Below, piece after piece: positions 5,786 to 25,307 of a stretch of DNA of 27,550 nucleotides. The translations under genes were made by a program, and so were the position numbers. The stretch covers positions 1 to 27,550 of the forward strand of contig NW_021833476.1 of NCBI RefSeq assembly GCF_006345805.1, given 5' to 3'. Source of the DNA: Octopus sinensis (Eukaryota). The notes below the pieces were generated by a model. It was not told the origin of the DNA and ran no database searches. It saw only the letters and a list, made by a program, of their open reading frames with translations. How positions within the stretch are numbered: the stretch's first letter is position 1; each line of letters starts with the position of its first letter.

Positions 5786-7357
5786 TTATAAATCATCAAC
5801 TAGGTGACGTGCAATGCCCATACTCGAAAGCGTAGTTTTATAATGTGTCATATATTCAGGATCCGTCAAATAAAATATTTTTGGGTCCCTCTGTGTCTTA
5901 TTTGAGTATTTTGATTGACGATAAAATACGACTCCAATGAATATGATACTTATTACTAAAAATATGAGAAAAATAATCCAGGCAGACACCACACGTCTCT
6001 TTTGCCGGCTATCTGGAAATAAATTTAGTGGTTCTGAGACCACCAAATAAACAGTCTTTGCAGCTTTTCCGAAATCATTTTCGACAAGACATCGAATACT
6101 CATTGACTTTTCTGTCAAAATACTCAAAAGTGAATTATTTTGTGACAGTGTTGATACCAATTTATCCGAATAAGTCTCTAAATGTAATAATAGTGTGATT
6201 ACCATATTCCTCTAAATTTATATACCACTTTATTTTAGGTTCGGGGTACCCTTTTTCAGGAATACATTTAAAATTCGCCGTATTACCAGACGTGACGTTT
6301 TGTGAGCGAAGGGAGTCAGAAATGGCAGGCAATTCTTTAATATTTAAAACTATTTTAACCGTAAATAGATACAGTAAATGTTTTTTCAGTTTCTTTCGTA
6401 TCTACATATGTCTCGTTCAAACATAAAAATTCGGTTTTCTTTCGTGGAGGTTTGTGTTCAGACCTACAAGCAAAAATTTCAGGTTCTTTTTTTTCAGTGG
6501 CAACTATTTTCATAACGTGAGATGAGATAAGTTCATTATTCTTATAATAAAGGCCAGGGTTTCCAACCCTAAAATCAATGTTGGTGGGAAAACCTTCCAA
6601 AATAGAAACAAGGGACGATATTATGGACTTTTCCAAACTCTAAAGCGACGTTTGACGTTTTTGGAAAAAAGTGAATTAGATCAAAATCGGATTCTTAAAA
6701 ATTTAGATTATTATCAAAATAAACCCTGAATAGTGAAATTAAAAAAATATGATTTTAACTCTTTGTTCCCAATACAAATATACTTGCACGTGGAGTCTTC
6801 TGCAATTAAGTATTTTATATATAAATCATTGTCGACCACATAAAATCTGTCATGATCTGCTTTCCCTATAATTTTGGTCATTTCCTCTGCATATTGGGGC
6901 CATCTGTGCCAGGTGCATTGGCCAGTGATTCCATTTCCACTTAGAATGGCAAATGGAAGTGTATATGTATTATATACTATAATTATAACATTTCTATATA
7001 CCGATATGTAGTATTGGACTCTCTACATTCATTGGGAGAGATATTTCGTAACCACATTCGTTTTCGACAGAACATTGAAATATTCCATTTCCTTGGAACC
7101 CCTTGCTAAATGCGAGCTTATTGCCATTTTTATAAAAATAGTAATTAGTTTCAAAGTCAATAGGAATCCCATCTTTAGTCCAACTGAATATTTTATATAT
7201 AAATATACTTGTATTCAGTTGTATTTGTCTCTATTGGACATGTAATACTACGCTTATAATAAGTGAGTAGAAATGTAGTTTGTGACATATCCATTGTCGG
7301 GGGAGTGCAGTGGAGGGATATACTTGGATAAATAAATATGAGCAGATAAACTAACAT
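5786..7357 (-). CDS. Immunoglobulin-superfamily type I membrane protein (~471 aa, about four Ig-like domains)
   Basis: ATG at 7357; introns 7184-7208, 6977-7001, 6694-6724, 6569-6593, 6335-6359, 6178-6202 (25,25,31,25,25,25 nt) give a 1416-nt open frame. Features: signal peptide MLVYLLIFIYPSISL; ITCP..YNWTKDG..GIFQCSVENECG; FKCIPEKGYPEPKIKWY..CLVENDFG; TM AWIIFLIFLVISIIFIGVVFY; short cytoplasmic tail. Confidence 0.85.
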
Positions 7358-9300: not shown

Positions 9301-10199
9301 GTTGAGCTGACTTTTAGGCTCTCGACTGTTTTTTAGTTACCTTGTCTGTTTTTGGTCACATAATGAAATAATTAAAATTAAAAAAATTTATTGAACATTT
9401 AGCGATCTCATGACAATATACGCTGAAACAAAAAGCGACGCCATTGGTGTAATCACCGTATAGAAGAAGCAGGGTCTTTTGCTTGCTCCGTTTCCGGCCT
9501 GAGCCAGTACGACCCTCATTATTCAAACCTGAGAGCATTACTTTCATAATACTATCATGTTCACATTAACCATACGATGGCAACAGGCATCACTTACGAC
9601 CGACCACACGGCTTAATTTTTTCGGGATAAATGAATGTTAATATCAATTGTTTTTCATTCTTATCAATTTTTATTTAAATTCAAGATATAAGTCTGCTTG
9701 ATTTTTACAGTATAAGATATTAGAGAAAGTCGCGTTTAATGCAAGCCACTTTCTTAAAACAACTGAAAGACAGCTTCATCTCAGAGATCAAAGTCAACTT
9801 CGGGTATCTTCCGTAACTTTTTGAAATTCCACATTATGGCAAATAGACAAAAATAAAAAATGTGCTTTTTCCTTTGTCTTTGAAACCTGTGACGTTGGAA
9901 ATCGTACTTCTCTTTAAATAAAGAAGCTCAGACTTGCCTTGGTGAATAAAACTAAGCCTAAAATTATCCATCTTACAAAAAAATACTAAAATAAGCTTGC
10001 GATATCGGGGATCACTTGAAATTATAATTAACTTGCTTACCCTGGTCTTTTGGTCAATAATATCTCTCTGTCTCTCTTTCATTTTCAGCGGAAGACCGAT
10101 CGTCATTCATAAGGACGACTATTATCCTATTTGCAACCAAAAAGGTTATTATCAACGATAATTATAAATCAATTTCATATGAATTCAGTAAAACATAAT

Positions 10200-10376: not shown

Positions 10377-10589
10377 TAGCTAGTTTTTTTTGTTTTCGTT
10401 ATTAAAAAAAAAAATTTTTTTTAAAAAAAGTTAATGTTAAATTCAGTAAAAAATTTGAGCTATTTAGAAAAATTAAATATTTAAAAATTATGCAAACCTC
10501 ATTTCTTATATTCATTAATCAACAAATCACCAAAAAGAGTAGAATTTTTTGTTAAAATTATGATGCAAAAGAATGGCAAAAATAAGACC

Positions 10590-10690
10590 TCTCTTTCAAA
10601 GAAAAAGTGTATTGTTTGAGATGCTACGTGCGTGAACTATTTTTCCTCTCAGAACATAAGAATATCACTAGAAAGGCCTGGAGCTCTATA
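10590..10690 (+). mobile_element. CRE-like non-LTR internal RLE remnant
   Basis: KKCIV*DATCVNYFSSQNIRISLERPG resembles GK.LVWDATCVDT..S.L....PG. Confidence 0.55.
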
Positions 10691-11059
10691 ACACGTGGGA
10701 ACATAATTTCAATTATTCAAACAAAAAAAATATTTATGAAACTTTGAATAATAAAAAATTTGACGTTTTTCAATCAATATAAGTCCCAAATATTCCAGAT
10801 TCCAATAATACGTTAAAGTAAACAATTCAAAAAGTAATCAACAATTTTTCAAAACGAATAAAAGCTTTAGTTACCTCTATATAATATCCCCCGCTAGACA
10901 GATTCCCGTGCAAAAATAGTGCTAGTAAAATTCATCGCCAGACTCAACCCAACAACGATGTCAGTCCTTGGTTTATGACCGACTAATTGCCAAAATCGAA
11001 AAAAGACTTTTCGCTTATTTTCCCGTGGAAAAACCGAATAATTCTACTCTTCCTAAAAT

Positions 11060-11541
11060 TACTTTATTTCCCCACGTTCACCACTCCCTCCGCCGACATC
11101 ATAAACCTACTCTTCACACAACCACAACAACTGCCTCACAATTATGTCCGGTGGACACAAATTGTTCACCACCGGGCCGAACATCACTACATTTCTCAAC
11201 GATACAAATCACTCTACTTTTATCCTCTCCTCCAAATTGCAAGCCATGTTCACCCCATTCAAATTCAACAGGTCTGATCTCAGTCAGATTTGCAGTCCCG
11301 CCCACCCACACTTCACTTTCGTCCTCAGGTCACGCACCCGATAACAGTCGATCACTTTTACCTCCTCACAATCACTCACCACGTCTATCAAATTCGTCTT
11401 TACTGTCAGGAACATTCGCAAAGAATGCAGTCGCACTGTATTTACCGTGTTCCCACACTTGTCTCCTTCATCCCACACGTAAAACTCCTCGTCTTTCAAC
11501 AGCTCTTCCAATTCCGTCATTCTCCTCATTTCCCGTAGCAC
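11060..11541 (-). CDS. Probable spliced gene of unknown function in the GC-rich island
   Basis: Purine-rich sense strand; MTELEELLKDEEFYVWDEG..; candidate 18-27 nt GT-AG introns (e.g. gtgggcgggactgcaaatctgactgag) remove in-frame stops. The exon structure is not uniquely resolved. Confidence 0.35.
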
Positions 11542-11599
11542 TTATTAAATATATCACGAAATGATGAGAATGCTCATTTATTAAACAATGCTCATCGAA

Positions 11600-11830
11600 C
11601 GCAATTTACGCTATGACTGTCCTATTGGGAGTGTCCTATTGGGACTATCAACCCGACAACCAGATGCAATTCATCCTACTGTCTTATGTATACGACTGCC
11701 CATTGGTACTGCTCAATTGGCACCCTTTTCTGTCCTATTTCCCATAGCACGCCAACCAGACGCAATTCACGACTGCCCTATTGGCATTGTCCTATTGACA
11801 CTCTTTTCTGTTCTATTGCCATTTGAGCAC
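11600..11830. repeat. Degenerate tandem array of CTGTCCTATTGG-like units (about 9), CCAAT-rich on the minus strand
   Basis: ATTGG at 11624, 11638, 11702, 11716, 11780 plus near-matches; longer duplicated block caaccaga(t/c)gcaattca. Confidence 0.7.
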
Positions 11831-11843
11831 ATCACAAAACCAT

Positions 11844-13070
11844 TTATTGGTTAACAACCGTCTTGATCATCTCCAAATCACTGAGGAGTTGTGGGTTGAG
11901 GGGGTCGATTGAAAGAGCACTCTCAAGGGCAGCCCGAGCTAGAGGATGCCAGAATACTCCCACCTTCCCCATACTCTCCAAGGTGAAAGTAGGAAGTCCC
12001 CATTCGACAGAGCGCCTTCAGACGACTATGTTTGTTGGCCTGGACTGGAGGGAGGAGGAGTGTGAGTGCCTGGGTGTGTGGTGAGGAATACCTGGCGACA
12101 ATCCTCAATGCAGTTTGAATATAACCCCTTCTGAAGGTAGGAAGCTGCCCGGTTGGAGTAGAGTCTGTTGAAAGTACAGTGGGGGATACGAGGGCATTCC
12201 TGGGCTGAGGGATATTCCGTGGGAGTAGGCGCTTATGGCAGAATCGTAGTCTCCGTGAATGTAAAATTTGCTGAATATTGTGAATATTTACTTTGCTTTG
12301 TCCCTTATGAGGACTGGGTTGGACTCCAACTCCCCTCCTGTGATCCGACAACCACTCGCCTGCTTCCTCAACCACTGCCACTTATGATTCACCACTCACT
12401 TCCTCCTCCTCTTCCGCCTTCGACTCCCGAGAGGGTGTTGGGAAATATCGCTCAGTGAATGACATTTTTATTTTCCCGGCACCACGAATTGGGAATTCTT
12501 TAGGAGACTCATTGTGTCTGGTGGTCGATAAATGACTCTGGGAGTCCACCTTCATGGCTGTCAGTTCATCTGCCACTTTCTTGTTCTCCTTTTCCTTGAA
12601 CAGCTCGATTTGACTAGTCTTCTCTGAGTCGAGCTGGGCAAGTGTGATGGGATGAGTACAGCAATGGCCGCCCTCACTGCCATTTGTTTGCGTGCACTAC
12701 TCTTGTCTTCCTTCACCTTCCTCCACTCCATTTCCTCTCTCATCTTCTCCTTGTTGTCTGCAACTTATTTTATTTCCCTACCCTCCGACATGAACGTCGG
12801 CCACACTTCGGGGACTACTTTTCTCAGATTGAACATTATTTGTCCTTCTTTTATCACCACAGTTGACTCGTCCTCCTCCACATCTGCATAGAGCAGACAC
12901 TCAAACAAGTAAGGCTGGTAATTGGCCTGATTGGTGGGGTTATATACTTTGATGTATCTCCTCGTGTACACAATGTCCACCGACGACGGACTGCTCCCAT
13001 GCAGTTCAAGTTTGAGATATAATGCACTCTCTGATTGGCCCCACTCCACATCCCGCACTCTTATCACCAT
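11844..13070 (-). CDS. DNAAF4: Dynein axonemal assembly factor 4 (DYX1C1): CS/p23 domain, coiled coil, TPR; 345 aa, 9 exons
   Basis: Introns 12927-12947 (21), 12758-12781 (24), 12634-12659 (26), 12375-12399 (25), 12271-12291 (21), 12165-12189 (25), 12070-12091 (22), 11939-11963 (25) give a 1038-nt ORF. Diagnostic segments: VRDVEWGQSESALYL, YIK-ANYQPYLFECLLY, IRGAGKIKMSFTERYFPTPSRES..EEEE-WLRKQA, DKANKFY..AISAYSHGI, LYSNRAASYL..CIEDC, LLLPPVQAN..RLKALCRMGT, ALSIDP.N. Confidence 0.95.
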
Positions 13071-13334
13071 GTTTCCTTGGATACACTATTAAGATAGTTG
13101 TCAGGCACACTCATATATTAATGGGTGCAGTCTGAGGAGTGTTCTCTAAGTTTTGAGGGCTTCCGAGACCATCATGGTTCTAGTTTTCAAGCCCCCTAAG
13201 CGCTAATTCCTTAAATATTTTTTTTGTTGAGCCAATTTTTTGTTATTTCCTTCTCTCACTATTGTGTCGATAAAACCATATACTTTTTTTTACTGACATT
13301 GGTTGGAAATTCAGTTAAGAACGAAATATTACCA

Positions 13335-13790
13335 CCACTAGTCTCCTGTGTTCTTCGGAACCCTGAGGCTGAGATCAAATATGTAGTTCGAACAGCTAAA
13401 GTCTCAAAACTGTGTGTTAGCTAGCAGTCTAGCTTTAAATCTTCAGCCTTCTTAGCTGCAGATTTAGCCTCCAGAGCACACGAAGTTAAATGAGAAGCAG
13501 AATAGGTGTCCCAGCAGGTTGCATCCCATACGAGACCTTTTCCGCCTTCAAAAGGGAAAAGGGTCATCCCGTCAGGACGTTTCCCATCGCCGCGGTCAAG
13601 ACCCGGTGGTTCGAGGACCAAAGGAAATCCCGCCGAGTCGAGGGCCCTCCGTATGATGTCATTCATAGCAGAGTGCCTCGGGAAACGTCCGGCACTCCTC
13701 CTGCATGATAAAGGGTGCAGACCGAAAGGGTCAACAGTGCAGCCACAGCGGCACGTGTGCGGGACACATTGCCTTAGTCCGAGGCGCAGA
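13335..13790 (-). mobile_element. CRE-like non-LTR 3' remnant (zinc knuckle plus RLE)
   Basis: [86 protein letters not shown]. Confidence 0.9.
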
Positions 13791-14097
13791 GTTCAAAAAA
13801 TCTGAAATTGATTGATTTAAAGTTTGAAAAATGAATATTCTATGCCAATTGAATCTTTTGTTTTAAAAAAGAGGCTTTTCCTTTTTATGCCCCATGCTAC
13901 CCTCAGTGGTTGCATTTATCGCTGACATATTTTTTGTTGATCATACTTTTCTTTCCTGTATCATTTTACTGACTCATGAATTCAGAGTTTATGGATTTCT
14001 ATCCATATGGCCATATGGCCATTGGTAATTTACTTTAAATTATAAGTAATAAAGCTAATCAATGACAGTTTTAGTCTGCTACAATATTTTAATCAAT

Positions 14098-16433: not shown

Positions 16434-16765
16434 TCTTTCCATTCTTGGTGGCTTATCTTGCTAAATTCTCATGGTGGTTTTCTAACTCAGTTCTATAGTT
16501 AGATGATTCAAATCTTCTATGGGTTTATCGATTATTTTGTTACCCCATTTTGACAAAAGGAAAAGCGGCTCAATTTGTGAAAAGCCTCTGCTAGAAATCT
16601 TTCCATTCTTGGTGGCTTATCTTGCTAAATTCTCATGGTGGTTTTCTAACTCAGTTCTATAGTTAGATGATTCAAATCTTCTATGGGTTTATCGATTATT
16701 TTGTTACCCCATTTTGACAAAAGGAAAAGCGGCTCAATTTGTGAAAAGCCTCTGCTAGAAATCTT
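16434..16765. repeat. Perfect 164-bp tandem duplication
   Basis: Units start at 16434 and 16598 and are identical by eye; TCTT microhomology at 16434, 16598 and 16762. Confidence 0.95.
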
Positions 16766-21165: not shown

Positions 21166-22650
21166 TATATTCTTTGGTTTTTATTTTTTTGCTCTCTTTC
21201 AATAGAGGACTAAAATATTGGCAAATAGCTTTTTTTGCTTGGTCTTTCTATTAGAATCAGTCGTTTCTAAAACTTTCCTTCCATCCTAAAGTTTTTGCGA
21301 AAGGCATAGTTAATTATTTGATTTTTTAAAGAGGTGTTTAACTCAACTACAGTTCTTTTTTTTTGGAGTGTGAATGTGAAAGTACTATTCTTATAGTTCT
21401 TATAAATTAACTTTAAAATGAAACGACAAAACTTTGATTAAATCAGATAAGACAAATTAACGAGAACAGAAGATTATTTAAACAGTTAAATGAGAAAAAT
21501 ACTCCCATGTCATCGCCTTAAAATTACGTCGGCAATCTAGTTTCAGATCATTGTTATTATGTTTGCATCTTTCCTTTAAGTAAGCGAAATGATAACAGTA
21601 GACTGTCGGCAAATCTATATCCAAGCCGCCTTTAATCACGTCAAATTTCTTAACTCCCAATTTTTTTATTTTTGAGGATTTATCTCCGAATATAGTAACC
21701 GAGTCTTCCAAACCTAAAATATCTCAGTCGTAACAAATACAGTTCTTCTCCTTCTACATACATCAAATTTTTAAGAAACTCAAGAGTTTGTAATTTATTG
21801 GGAACGGCGAAGATGATGTATTCACTCAGTGCCTGGACTCAACTTAAATATTTAAAATTCCCGATTCGAAAAGTTCTACTTATAGTAATTTGCAATCAGT
21901 ACTCTTAAACCATCATGTAAAGACTCCCGATTACGACAGAACAACGCTCAAATTGATTGATGTTAGAATTTGTCATCATAATGATTTCATCCACGATTTC
22001 ACAAACTATTTTTGTAATTAAAGACATTTAGAAACTATAAGAGTTATTGAAAACGTTCATTTTTATTGCGAGTCCGCCGATTAATACTTTCCGTTGTCCA
22101 CATTCCAACTCATTTTCACAATCGTGAATTATTTGTCTGTGAAAATGCTTATGATCAAAAAACTTTTAACAAGTGTAGCGCCAAATGGATATTTTATGAA
22201 GGAAATTCGTTCTTCCCCGGAATCCAGCGTGATTCTTTTTGTTTTGCTGCATTCTATGTATAAATAATGCTGCATTTTATGTATAAAGAAAAGTAAGAAA
22301 ATAGATCAATTTCAATTCAATTTTTTGTAATAATTAGATGTCTATAAGGCTTAAAATATAAACAAAACATTTAAAAAGTGGCAATTCCAGCGTCTATTCA
22401 CCTGTAATAATCAAAATTAGTTGCGGATCCACTTTTATACAGAATCTTTTTTGAATTCAGGATGATATAATCCGATGGATATTGACAATACAAAGGTTAC
22501 TTCTGCATTTACGCATGAGGCTCCAAAGAAAGTTGTTTCGATAACTAAGCAGCTCTTATAAACAGTGTCACACGGCAAGTGATTTATGTTGCGATTCTGA
22601 GACCACAAAAAGATGGGACTCTTTTGACAGTCAAATTAGATGATCTAGGT

Positions 22651-24339
22651 CAGGGGTGGCCAACCGGTCGATCGCGGCATGTTTCGTGGTCGATCGCTCG
22701 ATATATAAATTGCTAATTATTTTTTTTGTATTTAAATTATTATAAAAAAATATTTATCAATATTAAAGTAAGTATTTTTCACGTGTCTTGTTATGAGGTG
22801 TAACAAAAAGTCCAAATCATATAAATTTAATGCCAAATGGGAAAAAGACTATATTTTTACGATGCACATGGAAAAATGCACATGTATGCTATGCAATAAA
22901 ATCATTTCATTACCAAAAAGGGGAAATCTTTGTCGGCATTTTAATTTTTTACATGCCGAGTTCAACAAACACTTTCCTTTAAATTCCTTATTACGGGAAG
23001 AGAAAGTTGAACAATTAAAAAATCTTTTTTTCACAACATACAATTTTGAAAAAGTTTATTAATTCGTCCAGATCTGCAACAATTGCATCATTGCGAGTGA
23101 CTCGTCTCCTCGTAAAACACAAAAAACCTTTCACTGATGGGGAAATTTTAAAATCTTGTTTTTTGGAAGCTGCCGATTCACTATTTGATGGTATGAAAAA
23201 TAAACAGGAAATTTCAAATTGCATCAAAGAGCTTCAGCTCTCAAAACAGTCAATTGTCAGAAGGGCTGAAAGCATTTCTGAAAATCTTCTTTCGCAGTTA
23301 AAAAAGGATCTTTACGCATGTTCGTGTTTTTCTCTACAGTTTGACGAATCAAACGATGCTATTGATATCGCCCAACTATGTGTATTTTCCCGTTTAATCT
23401 TCCATGATCTAACTGTCAAGGAAGAGTTATTTGCTATTATACCTATGAAAAAAAGAACAACTGGTGAAAATATTTATAATTCTTTCAAAACGTTTTTGTT
23501 ATCATTCGAATTATTACCGTTAATGAAGAAACTTGTATTCATAACAACAGATGGAGCCCCTGCAATGATTGGGAATCAAAATGGATTTATTGCATTTTGT
23601 CGGAAAGATGAACATTTTCCGAAATTTTTATCATATCATTGCATCATTCACCAACATGCATTATGTGGGAAAATGTTAAATTTCAACTATGTTATGGAGA
23701 CAACAGTTAAAATTATTAATTCCATCCGAGCCAAGCCCCTACAAAGAAGATTATTTCGACTTTTTTTAGAACAAGTCGATGCAATCTATGGCGATCTACC
23801 TTTACATTGTGACATAAGATGGTTAAGCAAGGGATTAATTCTCAGTCGTTTCAGAGAATTATTATCATACATTAAAGAATTTTCTAAAGAATTTAGCAAG
23901 ATTTTTGACGTTGATCGAAGAAAAAGTCAAATAGAAATTATAAATCTAAAAAATGACATCACTTTAAAATTACATTCAAATGTCAACATGTGGAAATTTA
24001 TGTCTCAGGAAAAATATCCAATTTTGATTGATTCGTATCAACGAATTCTTTCATGCTTTGGAAGCACATATTTATCCGAAACATCATTTTCAAGTATGAA
24101 AATGATAAAATCTCAATACAGGACACGTTTAACGGATGACCATCTTGGGGATTGCATGAGAATAGCAATAAGCTTATACGAGCCAGAATTTGAAATAATC
24201 GCAAGTGAATTACAATGCCAAAAATCGCATTAATTTTTAATTGTAAAATAAAATTTTTGATATTAAAATATATAAGTCGATCTCCAAAAAATCGCAAAAT
24301 GAAAAGTAGCTCGCCGGTGAAAAAGGTTGGCCACCCCTG
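22651..24339 (+). mobile_element. hAT (Charlie/Buster-like) DNA transposon, defective
   Basis: 15-bp TIRs CAGGGGTGGCCAACC / GGTTGGCCACCCCTG; exact 8-bp TSD ATCTAGGT (22643-50, 24340-47). ORFs 22793-23062 (C..C..RH..H finger) and 23046-24233 (QFDES, TTDGAPAM, HCIIHQ, RWLS, STYLSETSFS) are joined by a frameshift in a T-run; an apparent internal deletion follows RFRELL. Confidence 0.95.
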
Positions 24340-24373
24340 ATCTAGGTACATCTGTGATCATTGTTAGAGATGA

Positions 24374-24745
24374 TGTCGCTCTGTTAGACACATAATAAAG
24401 CGTGTGGCTACCAAACATTTTTAGGAATTCAATCAAAAGAGTAATGACATCGACATCATTGTCACCGAATATGAAGATCGCTTCTTTTCTCTCAATGACT
24501 TGCATCACCCGATGGACTGCAATATTCATACATAGAAATTAATCTGTCACCAGTAAATTTGGGATTTTTGCATTAAGACTTAATGCCTTAATGATTAAGG
24601 TATTTGTAGATCACTTCATAAGACTGAGAACCTCTAGAAACAAGAACCTGAGCCATTACCGGATGGATATTGGATTCTTTTTCAATAGAATCACACCAAT
24701 CCGGCGAATAGTCAGAATAGACTCAAAGAGGAGTAGACTCAAGGA
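24374..24745 (-). pseudogene. recJ: Bacterial RecJ ssDNA exonuclease N-terminal fragment, decayed
   Basis: After removing a 22-nt insert (24572-24593) one frame reads ESTPL*VYSDYSPDWCDSIEKESNIHPVMAQVLVSRGSQSYEVIYKYLNAKIPNLLVTD*FLCMNIAVHRVMQVIERKEAIFIFGDNDVDVITLLIEFLKMFGSHTLYYVSNRAT. This matches RecJ (A.LL..RG; M..AV.RI..AI..KE.I.I.GD.DVDG.T..LL..FL...G....YY..NR). No introns. Confidence 0.85.
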
Positions 24746-24850
24746 GTCCTTCCTCATGAGCTCAAGGTCTTCACGAATGCGATCAAATATATGATGGTAT
24801 CATTCAAAGAATAACAATGATCGTCATCCATCCGCCATAAATGAGTATGG
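24746..24850 (-). pseudogene. secF: Bacterial SecF/SecDF fragment, decayed
   Basis: atg acg atc att gt tat tct ttg aat gat acc atc ata ta ttt gat cgc att cgt gaa gac ctt gag ctc atg agg aag. Restoring two 1-nt deletions gives MTIIGYSLNDTIIIFDRIREDLELMRK, the conserved SecF GYS.NDT...FDR.RE motif. Confidence 0.85.
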
Positions 24851-24905
24851 AAGCTGAACTGCTATGTTTTAGAAAGTAACAGAATAAAAAATGAATAATA
24901 AAAGA

Positions 24906-25307
24906 TGTATAGGGTTTTCCGAGTTTTAACGTCAAAGCCCAAGCATTAGTGTTGACGCATCAAGCATTAGTGTTAATTCTCAAGAATTCTGTGTTAAAAG
25001 TAAAAGCTACATATGGACTGCTGAAGTCATTCCAAATTTTAATATTGAATATTTACCATCATACTCTCCTTTTATGTATCATTGAGAATATATTTGCATT
25101 AAGGTATTCTCCGGATAAAAGCGTCTTGTAATTTCCGAGAATGTCAACAGCGAAATAAAGTTGAAAAATGAATAGAACTTTGTTTTTTAGACCGTCGACA
25201 CGAATGCTTGATGCATTAACACTAATTCTAGATCCGTAAGCACTAATGCTGGTACATTAACACTAATGCTTGCGGTTTTTACGTTAAAGCTCGGGAAACC
25301 CTATACA
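24906..25307. mobile_element. Non-autonomous TIR element (MITE), ~400 bp
   Basis: ~49-bp imperfect TIRs TGTATAGGGTTTTCCGAGTTTTAACGTCAAAGCCCAAGCATTAGTGTT / AACACTAATGCTTGCGGTTTTTACGTTAAAGCTCGGGAAACCCTATACA, with subterminal GCATTAGTGTT repeats in inverted orientation at both ends. No clear TSD. Confidence 0.8.

Follow-up and report, generated by a model that had tools for sequence, protein, structure and literature searches.

Probable nuclear insertion of decayed Simkania-like chlamydial DNA, interrupted by a hAT transposon, in Octopus sinensis

The presence of bacterial-looking gene fragments in an octopus contig raises the question of whether they reflect contamination, a faulty assembly, or a past transfer of DNA into the nucleus. 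The window, i.e., the whole stretch of 27,550 nucleotides from Octopus sinensis analyzed here (contig NW_021833476.1, positions 1 to 27,550), is AT-rich eukaryotic DNA with 34% GC that carries exons for a Rho-type GTPase, an Ig-like domain, and a CS domain as well as transposons. An initial annotation of this DNA had recognized two adjacent remnants of bacterial genes, secF and recJ, and had ascribed them to a probably chlamydial donor. The evidence set out below adds a third gene and a non-coding region to this remnant and leads to the reading that the region is a non-functional, ameliorated nuclear insertion of Simkania-like chlamydial DNA in Octopus, and not contamination, with a probability of roughly 0.9. 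Bacterial inserts without function are in themselves a type of feature already known from animal genomes.

The two remnants first described, co-oriented on the minus strand between 24374 and 24850, are both recovered by matches to Pfam and TIGR models. The secDF relic (24741–24840, minus strand) comprises ~35 codons of the SecF half, corresponding to codons ~1410–1445 of 1523, and reads MTII(G)YSLNDTII(I)FDRIREDLELMRKDSL, distributed over three frames as the pieces GGWMTII, YSLNDTII, and IFDRIREDLELMRKDSL. When stitched together (GGWMTII.YSLNDTII.IFDRIREDLELMRKDSL), these pieces match Pfam SecD_SecF_C with E = 1.2e-6 and 28.5 bits (cut-off 20.5) and TIGR00966 SecF with E = 8e-9. Comparison with close relatives reveals two 1-nt deletions near 24815 and 24790. 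Instead of the SecD_SecF_C domain in an intact 12-TM frame that characterizes SecDF proteins, the relic displays a partial domain match and two frameshifts; to judge from its sequence, it is a gene fragment and not a family member able to function. The recJ relic (24348–24733, minus strand) covers codons ~7–131 of ~576. The stretch had been correctly recognized but its length underestimated, since ~125 rather than ~115 codons are preserved, reaching up to the target-site duplication of a hAT transposon at 24348. The RecJ piece aligns with model positions 2–95 of TIGR00644 recJ (E = 7e-12; 44 bits at a cut-off of 397), and a profile built from 80 chlamydial RecJ proteins matches the six-frame translated window with E = 4e-18 and 1e-9. 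The reading frame is interrupted by two stop codons, one arising from TGG to TGA in P-L-W-V-Y near 24724 and the other from CAA to TAA (glutamine to stop) near 24541, and by an insertion of 22 nt at 24578–24599. The DHH motif GDNDVDG is changed to GDNDVDV and is followed by a 9-nt deletion near 24445, which falls within the GDNDVDG-IT motif just after GDNDVD. The DHH, DHHA1, and OB domains with intact motifs that define a RecJ protein are not found in the relic. Between the two relics, ~327 nt have been lost; this loss took the final ~80 codons of SecDF, the spacer, and the initial ~6 codons of RecJ, and the repeat search detected a 16-nt tandem duplication (CTCCTTGAGTCTACTC / CTCTTTGAGTCTATTC; 24715–24746, minus strand) at this deletion junction. 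The stops, the 1-nt deletions, the 22-nt insert, and the lost SecF C-terminus reported at the outset are all present when the relics are compared with close relatives, and the bacterial origin of both genes is borne out by profile matches and by homology at the DNA level.

A third relic (22475–22650, plus strand) lies across the hAT element from recJ and secF. Tblastn searches of the window with all ORFs of the 80 chlamydial loci described below gave 66 matches at 22549–22653 on the plus strand, and a profile of the corresponding family matches the window with E = 1.4e-6. The bacterial homologues of this relic are proteins of 140–180 aa with two tandem excisionase-type HTH domains. Euo is described as having paired TorI-like winged HTH (wHTH) domains, and its DNA binding requires Y31, R47, and Y100 (PMC4989314); the resulting Y-16-R-53-Y spacing is fitted exactly by the Waddlia ORF of locus L064. 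Euo (CT446) is a Chlamydiales-specific signature protein (PMC1403754), and its gene neighbours recJ in C. trachomatis (PMC10653925). Among 3300 Euo-family homologues retrieved, all named ones are chlamydial. The tandem wHTH architecture, the Y/R/Y spacing, the Chlamydiales-only distribution, and the recJ neighbourhood together identify the third relic as euo. The two tandem excisionase-like wHTH domains and the three critical residues are features of the bacterial homologues and not of the relic, which consists of the start codon and codons 1–62 and retains the first wHTH only, in which the equivalent of Y31 is present, that of R47 is gone (TRW to TLL), and the frame is shifted. With frames read by eye, the relic runs through MDIDNTKVTSAFTHEAPKKVVSIT, a 1-nt deletion, AALINSVTRQVIYVAI, a 12-nt deletion, and LRPQKDGTLLTVKLDDL; the start codon, the variable N-terminus, and 24 in-frame codons are still present. 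The preceding 187 nt (22288–22474, plus strand) correspond to the non-coding region upstream of euo in the donor (promoter/5′UTR), form the left border of the relic, and contain a Shine-Dalgarno-like GGA(T/G)G. The idea that this conserved upstream DNA represents a tRNA or another known RNA was dropped after ARAGORN and Rfam had drawn a blank in the bacterial loci. As a separate observation, two adjacent euo paralogues were seen downstream of recJ in several chlamydial MAGs (loci L001–L005, L010, L011, and L046), one of the type '...KASKD.TRWTI...' and the other of the type '...RAYKNPTRWII...'.

The donor was sought with an index-free HMMER search of 1.84 billion (1.84e9) representatives in which the in-frame 54-aa RecJ piece served as the query. 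The best true matches are of the chlamydial GDNDVDG type, i.e., RecJ fragments sharing GDNDVDG, IHPV.AQ..SRG, and W.YP. The residues that had been taken as reminiscent of environmental chlamydiae (P.WVY, IHPV.AQVL.SRG, GDNDVD, and YYVSNR) form part of the chlamydial RecJ consensus. The top-scoring representative (P0001) was discarded, being a repetitive 652-aa protein with nine short matching stretches and no RecJ. When the stitched RecJ piece was used in a word-indexed protein search, no candidate had three 5-residue words in common with it, and neither an exact ORF look-up for the relic in other sequences nor an exact 25-mer scan of metagenome contigs gave a match. The RecJ representatives map to 80 genome loci, all of them from Chlamydiota MAGs. 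Some of these loci are labelled Verrucomicrobia, and one has 'VERR_A' in its name; older GTDB releases filed chlamydiae under 'Verrucomicrobiota_A'. In ~64 of these 80 loci, recJ is preceded at a distance of 350–700 nt by the SecF motif in the same orientation, in keeping with the secDF–recJ order put forward initially.

The N-terminus of Euo matches one group only, the subgroup containing P0090, a Simkania sp. by its NCBI name. P0090 is encoded on L084, a contig of 2.43 Mb, to which L088 is related. L084 and L088 share the gene order tsp(-), euo(+), tRNA-U5 methyltransferase(-), recJ(-), secDF(-), and the three octopus relics agree with it in order and orientation. The closest relative, L093 (Ga0180433_10000176; 108 kb), was found by a scan of JGI metagenomes. 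At the DNA level, 325 of 364 aligned recJ bases (89.3%), 159 of 173 aligned bases of the euo coding part (91.9%), and 171 of 184 aligned bases of the non-coding DNA upstream of euo (92.9%) are identical to L093, as is 91.7% of a 96-nt alignment of secF. For L084, the corresponding value is 77% of aligned bases, the non-coding euo upstream region included, and 82 of 124 recJ codons are identical. Protein identity to L093 is 73% for Euo and 76% for RecJ; for the RecJ fragment, it declines to 67% with L084, 63% with L088, 50% with other Simkaniaceae, 44–49% with other chlamydiae, and 32–41% with the best non-chlamydial representatives. A neighbour-joining tree of the RecJ fragment from which L093 was absent (200 bootstraps) unites the relic with L084 at 96% and with L088 added at 99%, and separates chlamydiae from all others at 100%. 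On the strength of these comparisons, the donor is placed among the Simkaniaceae as a Simkania-like chlamydia. The chlamydial origin originally proposed is thus upheld by an unbiased search and by euo, and is narrowed to this family. Non-coding flanks and a lineage-specific gene can evidently suffice to assign even a short and heavily decayed relic to a genus-level donor.

Alignment to L093 and L084 sets the borders of the relic at 22288 and ~24840. When tiles of L084, a Simkania sp. chromosome, are compared with the window by nhmmer, matches are obtained at 22288–22649 (E = 4e-51), at 24346–24731 in recJ (E = 1e-44), and at 24739–24835 in secF (E = 2e-7). Together with bootstrap support of 96–100% inside the chlamydiae and the Chlamydiales-specific euo, these matches attest to the bacterial origin of the DNA. 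A left border at 22237, suggested by one nhmmer match to L068, was abandoned, as both L093 and L084 put it at 22288. Profiles of 27 gene families from chlamydial loci detected no additional bacterial relic in the window outside 22288–24840, and tiled nhmmer searches of L077, L068, and L084 against the window revealed none beyond these borders either. A 23-nt tandem duplication at 22245–22290, TGCTGCATT(C/T)TATGTATAAA(T/G)AA, abuts the left border. The surviving bacterial DNA amounts to 854 nt from a donor stretch of ~4.04 kb (L093 3596–7632), with two internal deletions of ~327 nt and ~2.87 kb. Absent from the octopus copy are the recJ codons past ~131, the entire methyltransferase gene, the euo codons past 62, and, around the secDF relic, the final ~80 codons of the gene as well as all sequence upstream of its codon ~1410. 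All in all, the relic bears three stops, three single-base deletions, a 22-nt insertion, deletions of 9 and 12 nt, and the two large deletions.

Several features were recorded in the remainder of the window. A fragment of a host Rho/Rac-type GTPase exon (IVVGTKTDLR...) occupies 228–527 on the plus strand, and a host exon for an Ig-like domain, to which PDGFR Ig-like matches weakly, occupies 5786–6636 on the minus strand. At 9448–9582 (minus strand), Rfam Protozoa_SRP scores 66.1 bits (gathering score 65) over model positions 80–213 of 228; this could be a partial SRP RNA gene, a pseudogene, or a 7SL-derived repeat. From ~10500 to 14000, GC content rises to 45–49% against ~31%, with a strong negative GC skew at 10500–12000. 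This block includes the CS-domain exon (12765–13070, minus strand), while its other long ORFs have no Pfam match; the block may be a promoter region of the CpG-island-like kind or another repeat. At 16434–16765, a 164-bp unit is perfectly (100%) duplicated in tandem, either through a very recent event or as an artefact of assembly.

The element that separates euo from recJ (22651–24339, plus strand) is an internally deleted hAT transposon inserted in the relic. Its 15-bp terminal inverted repeat (TIR) CAGGGGTGGCCAACC is present twice and perfect, and it is flanked by the 8-bp target-site duplication ATCTAGGT, the left copy of which (22643–22650) straddles the euo/recJ deletion junction and is perfectly repeated at 24340–24347. 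Duplications of 8 bp made by Buster-type hAT elements fit nnnTAnnn, a pattern to which ATCTAGGT conforms. An ORF of 395 aa at 23046–24233 matches Pfam Dimer_Tnp_hAT (PF05699), and its homologues are ZBED5-like and GTF2IRD2-like; TIRs, 8-bp duplication, and dimerisation domain place the element in the Buster/ZBED5 type of the hAT superfamily. The protein is 90–97% identical to O. sinensis 'zinc finger BED domain-containing protein 5-like' proteins, and the DNA is 96–99.5% identical to further copies in O. sinensis GCA_006345805.1, one of which (L082) matches exactly 22651–24339 and has a separate duplication, TTATAAGG. The copies differ by 0.4–4%, consistent with an insertion later than that of the relic. 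Placement of the element's ends at a 21-nt inverted repeat (CTAGGTCAGGGG...), which the L081 copy flanked by ATCTAG had seemed to support, was rejected as L082 shows the ends CAGGGG/CCCCTG together with an 8-bp duplication. The L081 copy is flanked by ATCTAGAC, similar to the target-site duplication of the copy in the window. Before insertion, the empty site would read ...TTAGATGATCTAGGTACATCTGTG.... The relics had initially been placed between a hAT element and a MITE. This is true of the MITE-like element (24906–25307; 34-nt terminal inverted repeats, detected in the repeat search), which lies ~65 nt outside the right border, whereas the hAT element interrupts the relic and has euo beyond it. 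The MITE-like element has internal subrepeats (CAAGCATTAGTGTT), does not belong to the bacterial DNA, and has no copy among the three O. sinensis loci compared. The 8-bp target of the hAT element coincides base for base with the point at which the deletion joined euo to recJ, euo contributing ATCTAG and recJ GT...; such a coincidence with the junction of the 2.87-kb deletion has a likelihood of ~1% by chance. A TCTAGA microhomology, considered as the cause of this deletion, occurs at both L084 breakpoints and is not relied upon because it is missing from recJ of the closer relative L093.

The transposon bears directly on the possibility that a contaminating chlamydial read or contig was wrongly joined to octopus sequence. 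Bacterial contamination is frequent in invertebrate assemblies, and the relic–host joins at 22288 and ~24840 are taken from the assembly. However, the bacterial-derived DNA contains stops, frameshifts, the 22-nt insert, and two large deletions, its GC content equals that of the host, and a hAT element present in many copies in the octopus, flanked by a perfect 8-bp duplication of relic sequence, divides it in two. Since ATCTAGGT, which is relic sequence, is found on both sides of the element, the transposon must have entered DNA already holding the relic. Transposition therefore took place into DNA already in the octopus nucleus, which argues against a chimeric assembly and renders such a misjoin exceedingly improbable. 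Integration is attested by the hAT element inside the relic and by the octopus repeats and exons that the contig also carries. The earlier view that decay speaks for nuclear integration and against a living contaminant thereby gains the testimony of a host transposon with a perfect duplication.

The mode of decay was assessed in a three-way comparison of the relic, L093, and L084 over 707 sites. Changes on the relic branch affect 56 of these sites and are distributed 16/20/9 over the three codon positions in the coding parts. On the L084 branch, the distribution is 15/8/68, the third-position bias usual for selected genes. From the even spread in the relic it follows that almost all relic-specific change was neutral. 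The L093 branch has 7 changes only, so the donor was ~99% like L093 at these loci. Differences between relic and L084 are AT-biased (95 strong-to-weak, 50 weak-to-strong), and GC content is 34.7% in the relic, 34.0% in the host, and 40.2% in the homologous Simkania DNA. Lesions, codon-position spread, and host-level GC content all conform to neutral decay and not to a living contaminant. At an assumed cephalopod neutral rate of 2–5e-9 per site per year, on which the figure depends, the divergence of 8% suggests an age of very roughly 15–40 million years, or more broadly on the order of 10–40 million years. The same data bear on co-option of the fragment by the host, for example in a regulatory capacity, as a non-coding RNA, or as the source of a short peptide. 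Nothing was found in support of such a role, apart from the persistence of the euo start codon and its in-frame codons. Substitutions even across codon positions, disruption of all three reading frames within a few dozen codons, the lack of an Rfam family match at the relic, and the tolerance of a transposon in its middle make co-option very improbable.

The history of the locus may thus be envisaged as follows. A piece of at least ~4 kb of the donor chromosome, comprising the 3′ end of secDF, recJ, the tRNA-U5 methyltransferase gene, and, on the other strand, euo with the region preceding it, would have entered a germline nucleus and been joined into a chromosome break. Probably never selected in the host, the insert was reduced to 854 nt by the two internal deletions, while ~8% of its bases changed regardless of codon position and with an AT bias, GC content fell to the host level, and stops and frameshifts built up. 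Later, a Buster-type octopus hAT element inserted in the remnant, creating the 8-bp duplication. The sequence comparisons demonstrate the homology, the clade of the donor, the synteny, the pattern of decay, and the arrival of the transposon with its duplication, whereas germline entry from an intracellular infection, the mechanism of integration, and the age are what we infer from this picture; a past or cryptic intracellular bacterium, as suggested initially, would be a reasonable source of the DNA. The relic might also be genuine but have arrived by an indirect route, for example in DNA from prey, through a protist that hosts Simkania, or on a vector of viral or transposon origin. The Simkaniaceae known so far come mainly from amoebae and a range of marine invertebrates, and an octopus-associated chlamydia is absent from the literature searched, both of which would suit such a route. 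Yet the relic is not bordered by vector sequence, its flanks (22200–22287 and 24841–24905) have no homology to the bacterial loci, and the hAT element came later. Moreover, donors in known non-functional transfers of this type from bacteria to animals are overwhelmingly germline-associated intracellular bacteria. An indirect route is thus unlikely. As the searchable literature holds no report of chlamydial infection of octopus, the ecological link between octopus and chlamydia is one that we infer; nor does it mention chlamydial DNA in a cephalopod genome or Simkaniaceae from octopus, and it offers no relevant paper on HGT in cephalopods or on Ga0180433.

Insertion of Simkania-like DNA into the nuclear genome of Octopus has several known counterparts. 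Like the inserts transferred from Wolbachia to insects and nematodes, and like other bacterial inserts without function in animals, the relic is non-coding, decaying DNA of an intracellular bacterium in a host chromosome, in which bacterial gene order is kept, composition drifts towards that of the host, and host transposons strike later. In contrast to the inserts from Wolbachia, an alphaproteobacterium, the relic comes from a chlamydia (Simkaniaceae), resides in a cephalopod mollusc, and is small, with 854 nt left of at least ~4 kb; we know of no living symbiont in the octopus host. The relic shares genes, order, and orientation with the tsp/euo/tRNA-U5 methyltransferase/recJ/secDF segment of Simkania (L084, L088, and L093), but the octopus copy is truncated and carries stops and frameshifts. 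It has a Chlamydiota donor and a eukaryotic nuclear recipient in common with the genes of chlamydial origin in plants and algae. While those are intact, expressed, and ancient, the octopus relic is dead, and its donor lineage is still recognizable at the DNA level. As with NUMTs, integration probably occurred when stray DNA was captured in a double-strand break, and neutral decay followed, although the source was a foreign bacterium and not an organelle.

Dead bacterial inserts in animals are records of past germline infections. Nearly all known inserts of this kind stem from Wolbachia and a few other arthropod symbionts, and a chlamydial insert in octopus would extend this list by one donor phylum and one host class, both new. 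We tentatively raise the possibility that this is the first documented chlamydial transfer to the germline of a cephalopod, perhaps of any animal, from a donor ~99% like the L093 lineage. L093 represents a Simkania-like lineage that is still in the environment. The relic would constitute a molecular trace, with a date attached, of a Simkania-like bacterium among cephalopods, for which no such association is reported in the literature searched. If the reading is correct, octopus germ cells would have been infected by Simkaniaceae at some time during the past few tens of millions of years; such infection of germ cells may still occur, and further relics would be expected throughout the genome.
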